From: Macrostomum hystrix
Taxonomy: Eukaryota; Animalia; Platyhelminthes
Direction: 5' to 3'
Assembly: GCA_950097015.1 (NCBI GenBank)
Contig: CATNEN010000038.1
Span: forward strand, 34,100,001-34,164,000
DNA length: 64,000 nt
The notes below the pieces were generated by a model. That model searched no databases. It was not told where the DNA came from and saw only the letters and a list, made by a program, of their open reading frames with translations. This document shows, one piece after another, positions 16,191-30,293 of the stretch. The position numbers and the translations under genes were made by a program. The first letter of the stretch is position 1, and every line of letters begins with the position of its first letter.

Positions 16191-16297
16191 TTTATTTTGG
16201 CTGAGATTTTAAGATGTTTTCAGGTATTGCTCGATTTTGTCAGGGATTATTAAATATTGTCAGATGTCAGTAAAATTATTCTTGTTATCAACTTCAG

Positions 16298-18230
16298 TCT
16301 ATCTCAATCAGCTACGCCGCTGCCTCAGCAGCCCTGCTGCTGTTCCTGACGGTGGCAAGCAGCGGTGTGCTGGCCTCCATGGAGCAGCCGTACTGCACCT
16401 TCTTTGGCAATCGAGCGCCGGCGCCGCAGCCAACTCTGCACAATTGCACCTGGTATCGGCGGCACAGCTGCTGCCGTGGCGAGGAGATCAACATTACCTT
16501 CGCCAGCGTGCGGCCGCTGCAGGGCGCGTCTCGCAGCTGCCTACGCTACTTCAACTCGTTAATGTGCTACATCTGCAGCCCGTCGCAGTGGATGTTCTAC
16601 AGGGGCGAATCTCTCACTGTGTGTCGCGACTTCTGCGACAAATGGTATCAAGCTTGCGGCAGCGCCTTCATCAAGGTTCGCCACTGTCCGTTCTGGGTGT
16701 CTGTTCTGGGTGTCTGTTCTGGGTGTCCGTTCTGGGTGTCTGTCTGGGTGTCTGTTCTGGGTGTCTGTTCTGGGTGTCTGTTCTGGGTGTCTGTTCTGGG
16801 TGTCTGTTCTGGGTGTCTGTTCTGGGTGTCTGTTCTGGGTGTCTGTTCTGGGTGTCCGTTCTGGGTGTCTGTCTGGGTGTCTGTTCTGGGTGTCTGTTCT
16901 GGGTGTCTGTTCTGGGTGTCTGTTCTGGGTGTCTGTCCTGGGTGTCTGTTCTGGGTGTCTGTTCTGGGTGTCTGTTCTGGGTGTCTGTTCTGGGTGTCTG
17001 TCCTGGGTGTCTGTTCTGGGTGTCTGTTCTGGGTGTCTGTTCTGGGTGTCTGTTCTGGGTGTCTGTTCTGGGTGTCTGTTCTGGGTGTCTGTTCTGGGTG
17101 TCTGTTCTGGGTGTCAGTTTTGGGTGTCTGTCTGTTCTGAATCTCTGTTCTGGTTGTTTGTCTGTTCTGAATCTCTGTTCTGGGTGTCTGTCTGTTCTGA
17201 ATGTCTGTTCTGGTTGTCTCTTAGTTCTGAATATCTGTTCTGAATGTCTGTTCTGAATGTCTGTTCTGAATGTCTGTTCTGAATGTCTGTTCTGAGTGTC
17301 TGTTTTGGGTATCTGTCTGTTCTGAATCTCTGTTCTGGGTGTCTGTCTGTTCTGAATGTCTGTTCTGGTTGTCTCTTAGTTCTAGTTCTGAATATCTGTT
17401 CTGAATGTCTGTTCTGAATTTCTGTCCTGAGTGTCTGTTCTGGGTGTCTGTTTTGGGTGTCTGTTCTGGGTGTCTGTTTTGGGTGTCTGTCTGTTCTGAA
17501 TATCTGTTCTGAATGTCTGTTCTGAATGTCTGTTCTGAGTGTCTGTTTTGGGTGTCTGTCTGTTCTGAATGTCTGTTCTGAATGTCCGTTCTGAATGTCT
17601 GTTCTGGTTGTCTCTTAGTTCTCAATATCTGTTCTGAATGTCTGTTCTGAATGTCTGTTCTGATTGTCTGTTCTGAATTTCTGTTCTGGGTGTCTGTCTG
17701 TTCTGAATGTCTGTTCTGAATGTCTGTTCTGAGTGTCTGTTCTGAATTTCTGTTCTGGGTGTCTGTCTGTTCTGAATGTCTGTTCTGAATGTCTGTTCTG
17801 AGTGTCTGTACTGAATTTCTGTTCTGGGTGTCTGTCTGTTCTTAATGTCTGTTCTGAATGTCTGTTCTGAGTGTCTGTTCTGAATTTCTGTTCTGGGTGT
17901 CTGTCTGTTCTAGGTGTCTGTTTTCCATCCAGTTTTCCATTTTTCATCCAGTCGTGTGTGTCTGTCTTTCATTTGTACTAAGGTTTCGTATTTGTATCTG
18001 CAGCTGTCCTGCTGCCTCTATTGCAGGGTCAAACCGTGGCCTCCCTATTTGAAAATGGCTACAAACTGTGCGACAGTCGCCAATTCAAAGTGTCAACTGG
18101 CAAAGACGACTGCTTTCGCTATGTTGCGGAAGAGGACGAAGTATTTGCCGGCGCGTCCGGGCCGACCAGAGCGCCTAATTTGGCACTAGCGGTCTCTGTG
18201 GCTGCAGCCATTGCTATTGTTCCTTTTTAA
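16298..18230 (+). CDS. Folate-receptor-family (FOLR/riboflavin-binding/retbindin-like) protein with signal peptide and probable GPI signal; no start codon ahead of the signal peptide
   Basis: Exons 16298-16675 and 18027-18230 (phase 0). Cys pattern CTWYRRHSCC...C..YFNSLMCYICSP...VCRDFCDKWYQACG. Hydrophobic N-terminus SISISYAAASAALLLFLTVASSGVLA and hydrophobic C-terminus LALAVSVAAAIAIVPF*. Confidence 0.85.
16685..17920 (+). repeat. 13-bp minisatellite (CTGGGTGTCTGTT)n grading into (CTGAATGTCTGTT)n
   Basis: Fills the intron of the folate-receptor-like gene, starting ~10 bp after the donor. Confidence 0.96.
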
Positions 18231-18459: not shown

Positions 18460-18617
18460 CCCTCAATTACCCCAGCTGGTAACCCATCAAATAGCTGGAT
18501 GAACTGAAGCAATGCTGGGTTAAGTGTCCTGCTAAAGGACACAAATTGTTCCAATGGAGTCGGGAATCGAACCCCCGACCTTCAAGTCCCGATTCCGACG
18601 CTCTAGCTACAACCTCC
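18460..18617 (-). mobile_element. tRNA-derived SINE with CORE-like body
   Basis: Minus strand: tRNA-like head with B box GGTTCGATTCCC, then TGTGTCCTTtaGCAgGACACTTAACCC...GCTTCAGTTCATCCAGCT...ATGGGT, which resembles the CORE-SINE domain. Confidence 0.7.
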
Positions 18618-19544: not shown

Positions 19545-20012
19545 TACAAATCCAGGGTTATCTCAGATCCAGGACTATCTCAGATCCAGGACCATCTCAG
19601 AGTCAGATCCTAGATTTGCTCAGATCCAGGACCATCTCAGAGTCAGATCCTAGATTTGCTCAGATCCAGGACCATCTCAGAGTCAGATCCTAGATTTGCT
19701 CAGATCCAGGACCATCTCAGATCCTAGGGTAGCTCAGATCCAGGACTATCTCGGATCCAGCATTATCTCAGATCCTAGATTAGCTCAGATCCAGGACTAT
19801 CTCGGATCCTAGATTAGCTCAGATCCAGGACTATCTCGGATCCTAGATTAGCTCAGATCCAGGACTATCTCGGATCCTAGATTAGCTCAGATCCAGGACT
19901 ATCTCGGATCCTAGATTAGCTCAGATCCAGGACTATCTCGGATCCTAGATTAGCTCAGATCCAGGACCATCTCAGATCCTAGATTATTTCAGATTCAGAA
20001 TCTGCTCAGATC
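19545..20012 (+). repeat. 17/34-bp dimeric minisatellite (CTCAGATCCAGGACTAT-CTCGGATCCTAGATTAG)n
   Basis: Tandem array ending ~35 bp before the first ITFG2 acceptor. Confidence 0.93.
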
Positions 20013-20048
20013 TACCTGACTAAACTCAGCCCTTATCTTTCTTGGCAG

Positions 20049-23000
20049 TCTTCAGTTCGTCAGGTTGACTTCGTGGAGAAGCTGGAGCTGTCGGGCATCA
20101 GCGTCCGGTCCCAGTCGCTGGTCTGTCTGGCCGATGTTGACAACGACGGCTGCAGCGAGTTGCTTCTAGCCAGCTCTGAGCAGCAGATCAACTCGGCTGA
20201 GCCGTTTAGCGAGAACTGCCTGCGCGATGAGAGTCACCTGTGTCGGGTGCTCATTTTCAAGGTGTCTTGTACCTTTTTTCATGTCGGAGCTTACCTTTTT
20301 GACCAGATAAATATATTTTCTGGTCATAGTTTACTGTTGGAAATGGTCCTAGTTTACTGTTGGAAATGGTCCTAGTTTACTGTTGGAAATGGTCCTAGTT
20401 TACTGTTGGAAATGGTCCTAGTTTACTGTTGGAAATGGTCCTAGTTTACTGTTTGAATCAGTCCTAGTTTACTGTTGGAAATGGTCCTAGTTTACTGTTG
20501 GAAATGGTCATGGTTTACTGTTGGAAATGGTCCTAGTTTACTGTTGGAAATGGTCCTAGTTTACTGTTGGAAATGGTCCTAGTTTACTGTTGGAAATGGT
20601 CATGGTTTACTGTTGGAAATGGTCCTAGTTTACTGTTGGAAATGGTCCTAGTTTACTGTTGGAAATGGTCATGGTTTACTGTTGGAAATGGTCCTAGTTT
20701 ACTGTTGGAAATGGTCCTAGTTTACTGTTGGAAATGGTCATGGTTTACTGTTGGAAATGGTCCTAGTTTACTGTTGGAAATGGTCCTAGTTTACTGTTGG
20801 AAATGGTCATGGTTTACTGTTGGAAATTGTCCTAGTTTACTGTTGGAAATGGTCCTAGTTTACTGTTGGAAATGGTCCTAGTTTACTGTTGGAAATGGTC
20901 CTAGTTTACTGTTGGAAATGGTCCTAGTTTACTGTTGGAAATGGTCCTAGTTTACTGTTGGAAATGGTCATGGTTTACTCTTGGAATTGGTCCTAGTTTA
21001 CTGTTGGAAATGGTCATAGTTTACTGTTGGAAATAGTCTAGTTTACTGTTGGAAATGGTCCTAGTTTACTGTTGGAAATGGTCATGGTTTACTGTTGGAA
21101 ATGGTCCTAGTTTACTGTTGGAAATGGTCCTAGTTTACTGTTTGAATCAGTCCTAGTTTTCTAGTCTCCTAGTGGAATTGATCCTCATTTTCTGTTGGAA
21201 TTGATCCTCATTTTCTGTTGGAATTGATCCTCATTTTCTGTTGGATTTGATCCTCATTTTCTGTTGGAATTGATCCTCAATTTCTGTTGGAATTGATCCT
21301 CATTTTCTGTTGGAATTGATCCTCAATTTCTGTTGGAATCGGTCCTCATTTTCTGTTGGAATTGATCCTCATTTTCTGTTGGAATTGATCCTCATTTTCT
21401 GTTGGAGTTGATCCTCATTTTCTGTTGGAATTGATCCTCATTTTCTGTTGGAATTGATCCTCATTTTCTGTTGGAATTGATCCTCATTTTCTGTTGGAAT
21501 TAATCCTCAATTTCTGTTGGAATCGGTCCTCATTTTCTGTTGGAATTGATCCTCATTTTCTGTTGGAATTGATCCTCATTTTCTGTTGGAGTTGATCCTC
21601 ATTTTCTGTTGGAATTGATCCTCATTTTCTGTTGGAATTCATCCTCATTTTCTGTTGGAATTGATCCTCATTTTCTGTTGGAATTGATCCTCATTTTCTG
21701 TTGGAATTGATCCTCATTTTCTGTTGGAATTGATCCTCATTTTCTGTTGGAATTGATCCTCATTTTCTGTTGGAATTGATCCTCATTTTCTTTTGGAATT
21801 GATCCTCATTTTCTGTTGGAATTGATCCTCATTTTCTGTTGGAGTTGATCCTCATTTTCTGTTGGAATTGATCCTCAATTTCTGTTGGAATTGATCCTCA
21901 TTTTCTGTTGGAATTGATCCTCATTTTCTGTTGGAATTGATCCTCATTTTCTGTTGGATTTGATCCTCATTTTCTGTTGGAATTGATCCTCAATTTCTGT
22001 TGGAATTGATCCTCATTTTCTGTTGGAATTGATCCTCAATTTCTGTTGGAATCGGTCCTCATTTTCTGTTGGAATTGATCCTCATTTTCTGTTGGAATTG
22101 ATCCTCATTTTCTGTTGGAGTTGATCCTCATTTTCTGTTGGAATTGATCCTCATTTTCTGTTGGAATTGATCCTCATTTTCTGTTGGAATTGATCCTCAT
22201 TTTCTGTTGGAATTAATCCTCAATTTCTGTTGGAATCGGTCCTCATTTTCTGTTGGAATTGATCCTCATTTTCTGTTGGAATTGATCCTCATTTTCTGTT
22301 GGAGTTGATCCTCATTTTCTGTTGGAATTGATCCTCATTTTCTGTTGGAATTCATCCTCATTTTCTGTTGGAATTGATCCTCATTTTCTGTTGGAATTGA
22401 TCCTCATTTTCTGTTGGAATTGATCCTCATTTTCTGTTGGAATTGATCCTCATTTTCTGTTGGAATTGATCCTCATTTTCTGTTGGAATTGATCCTCATT
22501 TTCTTTTGGAATTGATCCTCATTTTCTGTTGGAATTGATCCTCATTTTCTGTTGGAGTTGATCCTCATTTTCTGTTGGAATTGATCCTCAATTTCTGTTG
22601 GAATTGATCCTCATTTTCTGTTGGAATTGATCCTCATTTTCTGTTGGAATTGATCCTCATTTTCTGCTGGAGTTGATCCTCATTTTCTGTTGGAATTGAT
22701 CCTCATTTTCTTTTGGAATTGATCCTCATTTTCTGTTGGAATTGATCCTCATTTTCTGTTGGAATTGATCCTCATTTTCTGTTGGAATTGATCCTTATTT
22801 TCTGTTGGAGTTGATCCTCATTTTCTGCTGGAGTTGATCCTCATTTTCTGTTGGAATTAATCCTCATTTTCTGTTGGAGTTGATCCTCATTTTCTGTTGG
22901 AATTAATCCTCATTTTCTGTTGGAATTAATCCTCATTTTCTGTTGGAATTAATCCTCATTTTCTGTTGGAATTGATCCTTATTTTCTGTTGGAGTTGATC

Positions 23001-26000
23001 CTCATTTTCTGTTGGAATTGATCCTCATTTTCTGTTGGAATCGGTCCTCATTTTCTGTTGGAGTTGATCCTCATTTTCTGTTGGAATCGGTCCTCATTTT
23101 CTGTTGGAATTGATCCTCATTTTCTGTTGGAGTTGGTCCTCATTTTCTGTTGGAATTGATCCTCATTTTCTGTTGGAATTGATCCTCATTTTCTGTTGGA
23201 ATTGATCCTCATTTTCTGTTGGAATTGATCCTCATTTTCTGTTGGAATTGATCCTCATTTTCTGTTGGAATTGATCCTCATTTTCTGTTGGAGTTGATCC
23301 TCATTTTCTGTTGGAATTAATCCTCAATTTCTGTTGGAATTGATCCTCATTTTCTGTTGGAGTTGATCCTCATTTTCTGTTGGAATCGGTCCTCATTTTC
23401 TGTTGGAGTTGATCCTCATTTTCTGTTGGAATCGGTCCTCATTTTCTGTTGGAATTGATCCTCATTTTCTGTTGGAGTTGATCCTCATTTTCTGTTGGAA
23501 TCGGTCCTCATTTTCTGTTGGAATTGATCCTCATTTTCTGTTGGAATCGGTCCTCATTTTCTGTTGGAGTTGATCCTCATTTTCAGTTGGAGTTGATCCT
23601 CATTTTCTGTTGGAATTGATCCTCATTTTCTGTTGGAATTGATCCTCATTTTCTGTTGGAATTGATCCTCATTTTCTGTTGGAATTAATCCTCATTTTCT
23701 GTTGGAATTAATCCTCATTTTCTGTTGGAATTAATCCTCATTTTCTGTTGGAGTTGATCCTCATTTTCTGTTGGAATCGGTCCTCATTTTCTGTTGGAAT
23801 TGATCCTCATTTTCTGTTGGAGTTGATCCTCATTTTCTGTTGGAATTGATCCTCATTTTCTGTTGGAGTTGATCCTCATTTTCTGTTGGAGTTGATCCTC
23901 ATTTTCTGTTGGAGTTGATCCTCATTTTCTGTTGGAATTGATCCTCATTTTCTGTTGGAATTGATCCTCATTTTCTGTTGGAGTTGATCCTCATTTTCTG
24001 TTGGAATTGATCCTCATTTTCTGTTGGAGTTGATCCTCATTTTCTGTTGGAATTGATCCTCATTTTCTGTTGGATTTGATCCTCATTTTCTGTTGGAATT
24101 GATCCTCATTTTCTGTTGGAATCGGTCCTCATTTTCTGTTGGAATTGATCCTCATTTTCTGTTGGAATTGATCCTCATTTTCTGTTGGAATTGATCCTCA
24201 TTTTCTGTTGGAATTGATCCTCATTTTCTGTTGGAATTGATCCTCATTTTCTGTTGGAATTGATCCTCATTTTCTGTTGGAGTTGATCCTCATTTTCTGT
24301 TGGATTTGATCCTCATTTTCTGTTGGAATTGATCCTCATTTTCTGTTGGAATCGGTCCTCATTTTCTGTTGGAATTGATCCTCATTTTCTGTTGGAGTTG
24401 ATCCTCATTTTCTGTTGGAATCGGTCCTCCCTTTTGTATGTATAGGTATCTATTTATGTTAGCTGTTTACGGTTTTACGAACCAGCAGCAGCTGAAACTG
24501 CATTTACTTTTTTATTTTCTAAATATCGTCATGCACTAAGGAGCCTCTTTGTTAAAAAAATTCTTCTTTTGAAAGATACTCCACTATTATTTTTCGGAAC
24601 TAGTTAGGTTTTTTCTACAGAATTTGTTGCATTGTTGGGAGAAATCGATTTTCAGTGACGCTGACTGTTAGATTTGGTCGAAGCGAAATTAAACTGAATT
24701 GCTGAAATATTTTATTGGCTTATCTCGTTTCGTGGGATCTCGTAACAATTTTGGAAATACCGATCCTAACTTTAATAGTAAATTGCGCTGATCATTTTAA
24801 AGCGACGGGCGTATTTTTAGAATTCGCTTATTCGTATTTTTATCATTCATTAACAGCCTCCCTTGAAACTGTTCAAATAGTCATACGTTTTTCTAGCTAA
24901 TAATAAACTATTGCAATAGACCGTTCTACCATTGTTGGTCTGTCTAGGATAATTCTTTCACTGAAAGGATGAAATCCGGACATATATTTTACCCTTCTCT
25001 GGCACGCCATAACCTTAATCCTCCGATTCTGTCACTCCCTAGCCTTCCTTAATCCCCTCATTCTGTCACTCCCTAGCCTTCCTTAATCCCCTCATTCTGT
25101 CACTCCCTAGCCTTCCTTAGTCCCCTCATTCTGTCACTCCCTAGCCTTACTTAATCCCTCATTCTGTCACTCCCTAGCCTTCCTTAATCCCCTCATTCTG
25201 TCACTCCCTAGCCTTCCTTAATCCCCTCATTCTGTCACTCCCTAGCCTTCCTTAATCCCCTCATTCTGTCACTCTCTAGCCTTCCTTAATCCCCTCATTC
25301 TGTCACTCCCTAGCCCTCCTTAATCCTCCGATTCTGTCACTCCCTAGCCTTCCTTAATCCCCTCATTCTGTCACTCCCTAGCCTTCCTTAGTCCCCTCAT
25401 TCTGTCACTCCCTAGCCTTCCTTAATCCCCTCATTCTGTCACTCCCTAGCCTTCCTTAATCCTCCGATTCTGTCACTCCCTAGCCTTCCTTAATCCCCTC
25501 ATTCTGTCACTCCCTAGCCTTCCTTAATCCCCTCATTCTGTCACTCCCTTGCCTTCCTTAGTCCCCTCATTCTGTCACTCCCTAGCCTTCCTTAATCCCC
25601 TCATTCTGTCACTCCCTAGCCTTACTTAATCCTCCCATTCTGTCGCTCCCTAGCCTTCTTTAATCCCCTCATTCTGTCACTCTCTAACCTTCCTTAATCC
25701 CCTCATTCTGTCGCTCCCTTGCCTTTCTTAATCCCCTCATTCTGTCACTCCCTAGCCTTCCTTAATCCCCTCATTCTGTCACTCCCTTGCCTTCCTTAAT
25801 CCCCTCATTCTGTCACTCCCTAGCCTTCCTTAATCCCCTCATTCTGTCACTCCCTAGCCTTACTTAATCCTCCCATTCTGTCGCTCCCTAGCCTTCTTTA
25901 ATCCCCTCATTCTGTCACTCTCTAACCTTCCTTAATCCCCTCATTCTGTCGCTCCCTTGCCTTTCTTAATCCCCTCATTCTGTCACTCCCTAGCCTTCCT

Positions 26001-29000
26001 TAGTCCCCTCATTCTGTCACTCCCTAGCCTTACTTAATCCCTCATTCTGTCACTCCCTAGCCTTACTTAATCCCTCATTCTGTCACTCCCTAGCCTTCCT
26101 TAATCCCCTCATTCTGTCACTCCCTAGCCTTCCTTAATCCTCCGATTCTGTCACTCCCTAGCCTTCCTTAATCCCCTCATTCTGTCACTCCCTAGCCTTC
26201 CTTAATCCCCTCATTCTGTCACTCCCTAGCCTTCCCTAATCCCCTCATTCTGTCACTCCCTAGCCTTCCTTAATCCCCTCATTCTGTCACTCCCTAGCCT
26301 TCCTTAATCCCCTCATTCTGTCACTCCCTAGCCTTACTTAATCCCCTCATTCTGTCACTCCCTTGCCTTCCTGAATCCCTCATTCTGTCACTCCCTAGCC
26401 TTCCTTCTCTCTAATATATTTATTCACTTCTACTCCGCAGGGCGAGTCGACCAAGCCGGCGCTGTCCACGGACAAGATTGGCAGTGTCTCCTGTTTAACA
26501 GTTGGCGATCTGCTGAACGATGGCGGACGCAAACTACTTCTTGTCTGCTGCGCTGAGGGCGACGCCCACCTCATTGAGGTTAGGCTCGCTTCGAGTTTAT
26601 CTATTTTTTATCCTCTAGAAATTCACCCCAAAGTAATCTATGATTTTTCTCAAATAGTAGAACTCAGGTCAAATCAAAGCAGATTCTGAAATTGTTTTCT
26701 GCCTAATTGTTTTAGCTGACAATGGCAGCTATCTGATACTTTTTTACATCGACATTACATTTTTACAATGGTGCTGCTTATCGATTATTATTATTTTAAT
26801 TCAGAAGTCAGTGAGTCATTGAGTTATTCCAACTGAAGCAGTTCAGATATCCCAACTGAAGCAGTTCAGATATCCCAACTGATGCAGTTCAGATATCCCA
26901 ACTGAAGCAGTTCAGATATCCCAACTGAAGCAGTTCAGATATCCCAACTGAAGCAGTTCAGATATCCCAACTGAAGCAGTTCAGATATCCCAACTGAAGC
27001 AGTTCAGATATCCCAACTGAAGCAGTTCAGATATCCCAACTGAAGCAGTTCAGATATCCCAACTGATGCAGTTCAGATATCCCAACTGAAGCAGTTCAGA
27101 TATCCCAACTGATGCAGTTCAGATATCCCAACTGAAGCAGTTCAGATATCCCAACTGATGCAGTTCAGATATCCCAACTGATGCAGTTCAGATATCCCAA
27201 CTGATGCAGTTCAGATATCCCAACTGAAGCAGTTCAGATATCCCAACTGATGCAGTTCAGATATCCCAACTGAAGCAGTTCAGATATCCCAACTGATGCA
27301 GTTCAGATATCCCAACTGATGCAGTTCAGATATCCCAACTGATGCAGTTCAGATATCCCAACTGAAGCAGTTCAGATATCCCAACTGATGCAGTTCAGAT
27401 ATCCCAACTGAAGCAGTTCAGATATCCCAACTGATGCAGTTCAGATATCCCAACTGATGCAGTTCAGATATCCCAACTGATGCAGTTCAGATATCCCAAC
27501 TGATGCAGTTCAGATATCCCAACTGAAGCAGTTCAGATATCCCAACTGAAGCAGTTCAGATATCCCAACTGATGCAGTTCAGATATCCCAACTGAAGCAG
27601 TTCAGATATCCCAACTGAAGCAGTTCAGATATCCCAACTGAAGCAGTTCAGATATCCCAACTGATGCAGTTCAGATATCCCAACTGATGCAGTTCAGATA
27701 TCCCAACTGATGCAGTTCAGATATCCCAACTGATGCAGTTCAGATATCCCAACTGATGCAGTTCAGATATCCCAACTGAAGCAGTTCAGATATCCCAACT
27801 GAAAAAGTTGAGTCGGCCACTTCCAGCCGAGAGGTCTGGAGTTCGAATCCTGGATCATTGGGAAACATAGTAAGACGTGTGCGCAAAACGCTTTTATTCC
27901 CCATGGCTTCGGTCCATCCTTCTGTAATGATTTGGGTTGGTCAGTAGTTCCCCAGTCCGCGGACTGAACATCTGTATACAGAATGCTGTCTTTCTTTCAA
28001 CCCGCTGCCAGGTCACACGGGACTCCGCCGACGGCCTCCGCGCCGCCTTGCGCGCCGGCTATCGTCTAGCAGCGAACGGCAGGCACCTTCTAATAGCCGA
28101 CATCGACGCCGACGGTCGCAACGAACTGGTTGTGGCCACCTCCGACCGTCTGGTGTTCTCTTATCGAGCCAGTCAGAGCGAGCTGACACCGCTGCAGAGA
28201 TGGGAGCTGGTCAGCCAGATTGGCTCCCTATCCCTGCACGAAGAGGATCCGGCCAATCACGCGGGGCCTAGGCACGTGCTGGTCTCTCAGCAGGGAGGTG
28301 CCTATGTCACACTGTGCGTCGGCGAGGCTAACACTGAGGCGCCATCCAAGGTGTGTCAGCAGTTTTGACTGCCTTTGGCTCTTCAGTAGGGCCTTTTAAA
28401 GTAAATGATCTTCTGTACCTTCAAGGCCGTCAACTAGCATCCTTCAGGGCCGATAACTAGCACACTTCACGGCCGCTAACTAGCACACTTCAGGGCTGCT
28501 AACTTGCACACTTCAGGGCCGCTAACTAGCACACTTCAGGGCCGCTAACTAACACTCTTCAGGGCCGCTAACTAGCACACTTCAGGGCCGCTAACTAACA
28601 CTCTTCAGGGCCGCTAACTAGCACACTTCAGGGCCGCTAACTAGCACACTTCAGGGCCGCTAACTAACACACTTCAGGGCCGCTAGCTAGCACACTTCAG
28701 GGCCGCTAACTAGCACACTTCAGGGCCGCTAACTAACACACTTCAGGGCCGCTAAGTACACGCTAGTATCCTTCAGGGCCGCTTTCCACTGCTCTTCAAG
28801 GCTCTCCATGCAGTATCTTCAGTGTCACTCTCCCAGGCATTCTGATCCGTTTCACAAGTGCTGAATCAGTAAATCATTCTCTAATAAATTCCTATACTAG
28901 GTAATCTACCATTCGGTGAATCCAATCACAGCCGACCGTCGCCAGTTTCCCAACACTGAGATAGTCTGCAGCGTGCGCCGATCCCGCCTGCCAGCATCGG

Positions 29001-29521
29001 CCGCCCCACCCTACATGGCCATGTGCACTCTAGACGGTAGCCTGATGCTGCTAGACGGGGTGTCAGACAAACAGATTTGGTCTCTGCAGGTCAATCATCA
29101 ATTGTTTGGCTTGGCTAAATTGGATTTAACCAACGATGCCGCTGAGGAGGTCATCCTATGCAGCTGGGACGGCATGTCCTACATTGTCAATCATCACAAG
29201 GAGGTCGTCAAATTTCAATTCCCCGAGCCTTGCTTATTCTTCGCAGCCGGCTGCTACGGTCTAGATGGTAGAGATGTTCCCGTACTGCTCTACGGCACAT
29301 TCGACTGTCGATTGGTGATGTACATCGGCATCAGCTTGGAGGCTATTCCCGCCTATCCGCTCCTTGGCGCCTCTGACGATGTTGACGAGGGTCTAGCTAA
29401 GCTGGCTAAACAGACCGGACTGAGTAGGCCTGCTCTGGTCCGACTGCTGCTGTACGACAGGCCAGCTCTACAGCGGCTGATTGACGATGGCAGAGCCGCT
29501 GCTGCTGATGCTGTAAATTAG
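20049..29521 (+). CDS. ITFG2: ITFG2 (integrin-alpha FG-GAP repeat protein 2, KICSTOR subunit), 4 exons, ~437 aa with an added initiator Met
   Basis: Exons 20049-20261, 26441-26578, 28012-28350, 28901-29521 (all phase 0). Motifs VCLADVDNDG.SELL, TVGDLLNDGGRKLLLVCCAEG, LLIADIDADGRNELVVATSDR, AMCTLDGSL, WSLQVNHQLFGLAKLDLT, EEVILCSWDGMSYIVNH, colinear with ITFG2. Confidence 0.93.
20322..21160 (+). repeat. 23-bp minisatellite (CTGTTGGAAATGGTCCTAGTTTA)n
   Basis: Tandem array in ITFG2 intron 1. Confidence 0.96.
21170..24430 (+). repeat. 23-bp minisatellite (CTGTTGGAATTGATCCTCATTTT)n
   Basis: About 140 units, related to the preceding array, with a 713-bp (31-unit) internal duplication. Confidence 0.97.
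25015..26405 (+). repeat. 34-bp minisatellite (TCATTCTGTCACTCCCTAGCCTTCCTTAATCCCC)n
   Basis: About 40 units ending ~35 bp before ITFG2 exon 2. Confidence 0.97.
26828..27801 (+). repeat. 23-bp minisatellite (CCCAACTGA[A/T]GCAGTTCAGATAT)n
   Basis: About 42 near-identical units in ITFG2 intron 2, with one A/T variable site. Confidence 0.97.
27805..27945 (+). mobile_element. Degenerate tRNA-derived SINE
   Basis: B box GAGTTCGAATCC followed by a decayed CORE-like body (GCTTCGGTCCATCCTTCTGTAATG). Confidence 0.5.
28420..28785 (+). repeat. 23-bp minisatellite (CTTCAGGGCCGCTAACTAGCACA)n
   Basis: Tandem array in ITFG2 intron 3. Confidence 0.94.
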
Positions 29522-29539
29522 TTTCTATGCCATGGATTG

Positions 29540-29848
29540 ACTATGGGTGTTATGCTGCAGTGGCTATGGGGTGTTATGCTGCAGTGTCTATGGGGTGTTA
29601 TGCTGCAGTGTCTATGGGGTGTTATGCTGCAGTGTCTATGGGGTGTTATGCTGCAGTGTCTATGGGGTGTTATGCTGCAGTGTCTATAGGGTGTTATGCT
29701 GCAGTGTCTATGGGGTGTTATGCTGCAGTGTCTATGGGGTGTTATGCTGCGGTGTCTATAGGGTGTTATGCTGCAGTGTCTGTGGGGTGTTATGCTGCAG
29801 TGTCTATGGGGTGTTATGCTGCAGTGTCTGTGGGGTGTTATGCTGCAT
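29540..29848 (+). repeat. 24-bp minisatellite (TATGGGGTGTTATGCTGCAGTGTC)n
   Basis: Begins ~20 bp after the ITFG2 stop codon. Confidence 0.95.
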
Positions 29849-30293
29849 TGTCAACAAGTAGTTTTTGCTGTTCTCTGTCCTAATCGTGCAGTTTTCAATC
29901 AAATCATTATCCGATGAGTGTAATTGTTAGTACAATTAAATTTCTAGCGCTTATCAAACACCCATACTTCACTCGCTGAACGACGCTTAAACAATAAAAT
30001 TCTTGCAAGATAAATACTAAAAATGTAATTTTAGCACAGAAAAAGTACGTCTTTCTTGTCACCCTGACAACCTGTTAAATAAAATAGCAGCAAATAACGC
30101 GTTAGCAGTGTTTAATGTTGAATTTTTTGTTGTATCGGATTTGTTTAGCTTTTAATTTCATTTGACGTTATTGCTTGTATTTTACAGACGGCAAATTGAA
30201 TGCGAACTCATTGCAGATTCGAACTAAAGACCATTCAACTTAAACATTTTCTAAAATTTCAGTTACACTTTTAAAAACAAAAGTACCTTAACA

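Follow-up and report, generated by a model that had tools for sequence, protein, structure and literature searches.

The start codon of the ITFG2 gene of Macrostomum hystrix is very probably supplied by a trans-spliced leader. Taken as a whole, this is the best explanation for the data presented here, and ITFG2 adds a confirmed new case to a mechanism that has been described before in flatworms. In the proposed pathway, the ITFG2 pre-mRNA would be trans-spliced at the AG at 20047-48 (positions are those of the window, i.e. the whole stretch of 64,000 nt that was analysed), and the donor would be a 44-nt spliced leader (SL) from SL RNA genes that are located mostly in tandem units of ~11.6 kb on other genomic contigs. 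The leader AUG would be joined in phase 0 to TCU UCA GUU, and the mature mRNA would have a 41-nt 5' UTR, all of it leader-derived. The first AUG would open a frame of 437 codons (M+SSVRQVDFVEKLEL...), corresponding to the full-length ITFG2 beta-propeller. Without the leader there would be no usable start, the next in-frame AUG being codon 270, behind five out-of-frame AUGs.

The ITFG2 gene and its missing start codon

A four-exon model of ITFG2 (Table 1) was built by tblastn with the M. lignano orthologue and by inspection of the splice sites. Searches were performed exon by exon, and the exons were concatenated only for the ATG offsets. All four exons are in phase 0 with AG/GT flanks, and the model has a total of 436 codons plus the stop. 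Exon 2 was placed by tblastn with M. lignano ITFG2, by its match to positions 3-45 of the Pfam Itfg2 profile (PF15907) and by the continuation of assembled contigs at 26442, and the boundary of exon 4 (...SK/VIYHSV) agrees with the M. lignano orthologue. The M. hystrix assembly that was searched comprises 220,453,370 bases in 42 contigs, with the window on contig C38 (35,345,953 bases). Exon 1, the first of the coding exons, is single-copy in this genome, and M. hystrix has no second ITFG2 gene.

Table 1. Features of the ITFG2 locus of M. hystrix, with positions in the window
Feature	Position	Strand	Remarks
In-frame TAG upstream of exon 1	19980-19982	+	Read in the exon 1 frame
Pyrimidine-rich tract and AG (20047-48)	20031-20048	+	Trans-splice acceptor; contigs of X2-X4 leave the genome match at 20048
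ITFG2 exon 1	20049-20261	+	71 codons, phase 0, no Met codon, then GT
ITFG2 exon 2	26441-26578	+	46 codons, AG/GT flanks, no Met codon
ITFG2 exon 3	28012-28350	+	113 codons, AG/GT flanks, no Met codon
ITFG2 exon 4	28901-29521	+	206 codons plus TAG; holds the first genomic in-frame ATG

Reading upstream from exon 1, no in-frame ATG was found between the TAG at 19980-82 and the exon, and no Met codon is present in exons 1-3. The first in-frame genomic ATG of the gene is at offset 804 of the spliced exons, which corresponds to residue 270 of 437 (62% into the protein), and the five out-of-frame ATGs ahead of it open reading frames of 11-38 codons. The genomic junction between acceptor and exon reads ...ccttatctttcttggcAG/TCTTCAGTTCGTCAGGTTGACTTC. 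An earlier note on this DNA, made from the sequence alone, had claimed that exon 1 starts right after a polypyrimidine/AG acceptor, that the gene has no genomic initiator and that its first Met is in exon 4, about 60% into the protein. These claims were borne out, and the acceptor sequence is as it had been quoted there.

The gene is ITFG2, a subunit of KICSTOR, as judged by family membership. As such a subunit, it would be expected to act alongside KPTN, KICS2 and SZT2. Exons 2, 3 and 4 matched PF15907 with 26.6, 62.2 and 139.1 bits, respectively (cut-off 27), at profile positions 3-45, 57-166 and 203-330; exon 1 precedes the region covered by this profile. The product of exon 1 begins SSVRQVDFVEKLEL..., and alignment to human ITFG2 from solved KICSTOR structures (PDB 25ge_B, E 1.2e-4; 9o5a_G, E 4.2e-5) pairs its residues 4-46 with residues 2-44 of the human protein. 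This alignment, with residue 4 at human residue 2, agrees with the earlier suggestion that an AUG added at the junction would fit the ITFG2 N-terminus. Nearer matches were the named ITFG2 proteins of Holothuria (sea cucumber), Styela (ascidian), Bugula (bryozoan) and Nematostella (sea anemone). The arginine at position 4 (R4) of exon 1 is invariant in an alignment of 10 sequences, and is residue 2 in several of the orthologues. End to end, M. hystrix ITFG2 is similar to the ITFG2 of the KICSTOR structures and to the named orthologues. As exon 1 matches M. lignano ITFG2 (E 1.6e-29) and exons 2-4 match PF15907, the exon 1 frame is not due to chance. By these protein comparisons, exon 1 encodes the true N-terminus of ITFG2. 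The N-terminal orthology therefore places 20049 within three codons of the ITFG2 start in other animals, at a site where the DNA offers no start.

Spliced leader sequence joined to ITFG2 exon 1

The RNA evidence consists of assembled contigs, which were mapped within 371 bases around exon 1; the kind of run is not on record as RNA, and rare isoforms, such as a minor one with a cis-spliced 5' exon, may drop out of such contigs. Contigs of 1405 nt in the public runs X2, X3 and X4 matched 20048-20262 with zero mismatches. These three SL-bearing contigs are all from one study. Ahead of 20048 they carry the 21 letters CGAAGACTCAATTTATTGCAT, and the next G fits the genomic AG and the ATG end of the leader alike. 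The sequence that follows 20262 in these contigs has one match in the window, at 26442, immediately behind an AG. The same joint of exon 1 to exon 2 is present in a contig of X1, from another study and with another organism label. At 26450 the X1 contig has a T, compared with an A in the window and in X2-X4, which changes ACC (Thr) to TCC (Ser) in exon 2; this is a strain or species difference. The 6.2-kb intron is absent and exon 1 is single-copy, with no assembled retrocopy, and the contigs therefore represent spliced RNA.

The joined text of leader and exon, ...TTGCATG/TCTTCAGTT, translates as M-S-S-V, with the leader ATG in phase 0 with TCT TCA GTT. The length of the contigs is concordant with the gene model, as 22 nt and 1311 nt account for all of the 1405 nt except 72 nt, which are left for the 3' UTR before a 24-bp tandem array. 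The earlier note had proposed that RNA would carry an SL ending in ATG at 20049, and exactly this join was observed at the AG acceptor in X2-X4. Its wider reading, that ITFG2 is trans-spliced and depends on this for translation, stands for the phase 0 join of an ATG-ending SL in the contigs, and the dependence of translation is what we infer.

As a finding that would contradict trans-splicing as the source of the start codon, the same note had named an upstream micro-exon with an ATG. In this scenario the main isoform, or at least a substantial one, would use the AG at 20047-48 for cis-splicing of such an exon, leaving the SL form as a minor product. This is very unlikely, even though flatworm acceptors often serve both cis- and trans-splicing (PMC12582326) and contigs cannot reveal rare variants: all three contigs that reach the acceptor run into the leader and not into window sequence, and M. 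lignano models, both transcript-based and genome-based, are also without an upstream ATG exon.

An artefact could take the form of an assembly error that removed a genomic ATG, or of an assembler chimera giving the contig of SL and exon. The contigs are identical to the genome over 20048-20262, and their joint falls exactly at the canonical AG. Leader and exon share one base only, and a 31-mer graph needs reads spanning the joint. Moreover, two M. lignano paralogues have the same start-less design. Set against these points there is nothing specific in favour of an artefact beyond the unrecorded run kind, and it is scarcely credible.

SL RNA genes and the leader AUG

The SL RNA exon has the 22-mer CGAAGACTCAATTTATTGCAT(G) at its 3' end. 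No copy of this 22-mer was found in the window at up to 3 mismatches, and the leader is therefore not a cis exon. The genome contains 30 copies of the 22-mer, most of them in arrays with a period of ~11.6 kb on contigs C15, C17 and C42. The array on C17 switches strand between 68,365 and 80,484. One SL RNA gene copy reads CCGTAAAGACGGTCTCTTACTGCGAAGACTCAATTTATTGCATG/GTAAGAC..., and downstream of this a U-rich Sm-like site lies between a first hairpin and a terminal one. The SL RNA folds with a minimum free energy of -35.5 kcal/mol (z -3.8 versus shuffles) into three stem-loops, with AUAUUUUUAG between stems. The features of an SL RNA gene were all found: a short RNA that includes the leader exon, pairing of the 5' splice site inside stem I, stem-loops on the 3' side and an Sm-like site; no Rfam family matched the M. 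hystrix SL RNA.

The GTAAG donor is missing from 11 of the 30 genomic copies of the leader 22-mer, and every one of the 19 copies with an intact donor reads ATG/GTAAG. M. hystrix accordingly has the AUG-terminated SL on which the earlier proposal relied. On C38 itself, the copy closest to ITFG2 lies at a distance of 6.2 Mb, on the opposite strand and without a donor (C38:27887300-27887800, -), and the leader is therefore supplied in trans. This copy comprises the full 44-nt leader with a short ORF, ATG GCT TCG ACT ... TAA, directly behind it in place of a GTAAG donor, and appears to have arisen from a trans-spliced mRNA by retrocopying.

The leader contains a single ATG, at its 3' end. As it has no other ATG, no AUG of the mature ITFG2 mRNA lies ahead of this terminal one. 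The terminal AUG shares its frame with the main ORF, and the conserved ITFG2 N-terminus can be obtained from no other AUG. Ribosomes would be expected to start at this AUG, and the SL-bearing form is probably the only productive 5' end, in which case ITFG2 would not be expressible without trans-splicing. By vertebrate Kozak rules, the leader AUG has a weak context, with U at both -3 and +4. This weakness, and the presence of an in-frame GTG at 20073, might point to skipping of the leader AUG, with translation beginning at a non-AUG codon within exon 1 or else at Met270, giving a truncated protein. However, the leader AUG comes first in the mRNA, and Met270 sits behind the five out-of-frame AUGs. 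In addition, exon 1 is conserved from residue 4 with the ITFG2 of other animals and from residue 1 with that of M. lignano, which implies its translation. Skipping is consequently judged highly improbable, and initiation at the leader AUG remains the preferred reading.

Conservation in Macrostomum lignano

The closest relative of M. hystrix ITFG2 in the databases is that of M. lignano, with 87% identity over exon 4. The M. lignano protein PAA92222.1 and its paralogue PAA60910.1 are both annotated as 'partial' and begin SSIRQVDFVEKLEL (SSIRQ), and two M. lignano UniRef models begin LFQ/SSIRQ and IKLLLQ/SSIRQ. A start Met is present in none of these four M. lignano ITFG2 entries, all of which begin at, or read through, the same junction. 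The residues before SS in the UniRef models are probably translated acceptor sequence ending in CAG, comparable to SWQ-SS in M. hystrix. Since the M. lignano entries are start-less, the design at the same codon is common to two Macrostomum species and to both M. lignano paralogues. The search for homologues returned M. lignano and distant animals only and no further Macrostomum ITFG2 proteins, and this conservation thus refers to one other species.

Genome-only gene finders cannot assign the start of ITFG2, and Macrostomum annotation pipelines need the leader AUG to be added. As such finders give no start, the M. lignano ITFG2 entries are 'partial' or open with translated intron. A broader reading would be that loss of the start codon predates the split of M. 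hystrix and M. lignano and belongs to a large class of conserved macrostomid genes, with trans-splicing as an obligatory, and possibly regulatory, licence for ITFG2 translation. This is considered rather unlikely. If it were true, the KICSTOR/mTORC1 nutrient brake would, via ITFG2, also be licensed by trans-splicing, and RNA that had not been trans-spliced would be untranslatable.

Neighbouring genes and repeats

The stop codon of an upstream folate-receptor-like gene is 1.8 kb before the ITFG2 acceptor. At 16270-16400 (+), this gene (PF03024, E 1.3e-17) likewise seems to start immediately after an acceptor, ...caacttcAG/TCTATCTCAATC..., and has a signal-peptide-like frame without an ATG of its own. 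It may be a second leader-AUG gene, adjoining ITFG2.

Downstream of ITFG2, a universal-stress-protein gene with its own ATG (PF00582; 30294-31229, +) is present on the same strand, 773 bases past the ITFG2 stop. In M. lignano, a 553-aa UniRef model named as a UspA-domain protein has a match to ITFG2 along 75% of its length. It is apparently a fused gene model, and the adjacency of ITFG2 and the universal-stress-protein gene therefore appears to be conserved.

Over 19550-29852, a separate minisatellite is present in the ITFG2 outron, in each intron and in the 3' UTR. The intron arrays (20321-24429, 26825-27803 and 28419-28755) have a common period of 23 bp with unrelated units. Intron 1 also harbours an array with 41 copies of a 34-bp unit, and the 3' UTR extends into an array with a period of 24 bp. 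At tRNA-like stretches near 18560 and 27830, no tRNA was found by ARAGORN.

Comparison with known systems

Flatworm leaders reported so far all end in ATG and are able to give a start codon (PMC12582326). According to Cheng et al. 2006 as cited in PMC9851317, the leader AUG is required by more than 40 S. mansoni cDNAs, and use of this AUG is conserved in Neodermata, with Echinococcus sharing it with Schistosoma (PMC3510090). In the M. hystrix genome paper, the final ATG of the leader was described as probably a start codon (PMC10468722). For schistosomes and tapeworms the leader-AUG mechanism is already in the literature, and for Macrostomum there are hints of it. The ITFG2 case is not surprising to a specialist, and no long-standing question is opened by it. 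A literature search returned no paper linking ITFG2 to trans-splicing, and the searchable text of the Macrostomum papers (PMC8629364, PMC10468722) contains no list of leader-AUG-dependent genes.

ITFG2 belongs to the published class of leader-AUG flatworm mRNAs, as all the defining features of this class that sequence and RNA assemblies can reveal were present. As in that class (Cheng, Cohen, Ndegwa and Davis 2006, J Biol Chem 281:733, as represented in PMC9851317, PMC12582326 and PMC3510090), the leader AUG stands before a GU donor, an AG acceptor immediately ahead of codon 2 receives the leader in frame, and only with the leader AUG does the N-terminus correspond to that of conserved orthologues. 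According to the same sources, the class covers Schistosoma, Echinococcus and other Neodermata and its translation was shown experimentally, whereas ITFG2 is a case from a free-living macrostomid, known from sequence and RNA assemblies.

The slORFs of nematodes, ascidians and euglenozoans (slORFfinder, PMC9851317) are alike in having the start codon in the leader and not in the gene. In contrast to ITFG2, whose single conserved frame begins with a canonical AUG, slORFs mostly use near-cognate NUG codons, often in alternative frames (PMC9851317). The leader sequence is identical to that of Macrostomum SL trans-splicing as described for M. lignano, M. cliftonense and M. hystrix (PMC8629364, PMC10468722). 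Initiation at a leader AUG, which is documented in parasitic flatworms, would be extended here to a conserved signalling gene of an early-branching free-living flatworm, and the design recurs in a second species.
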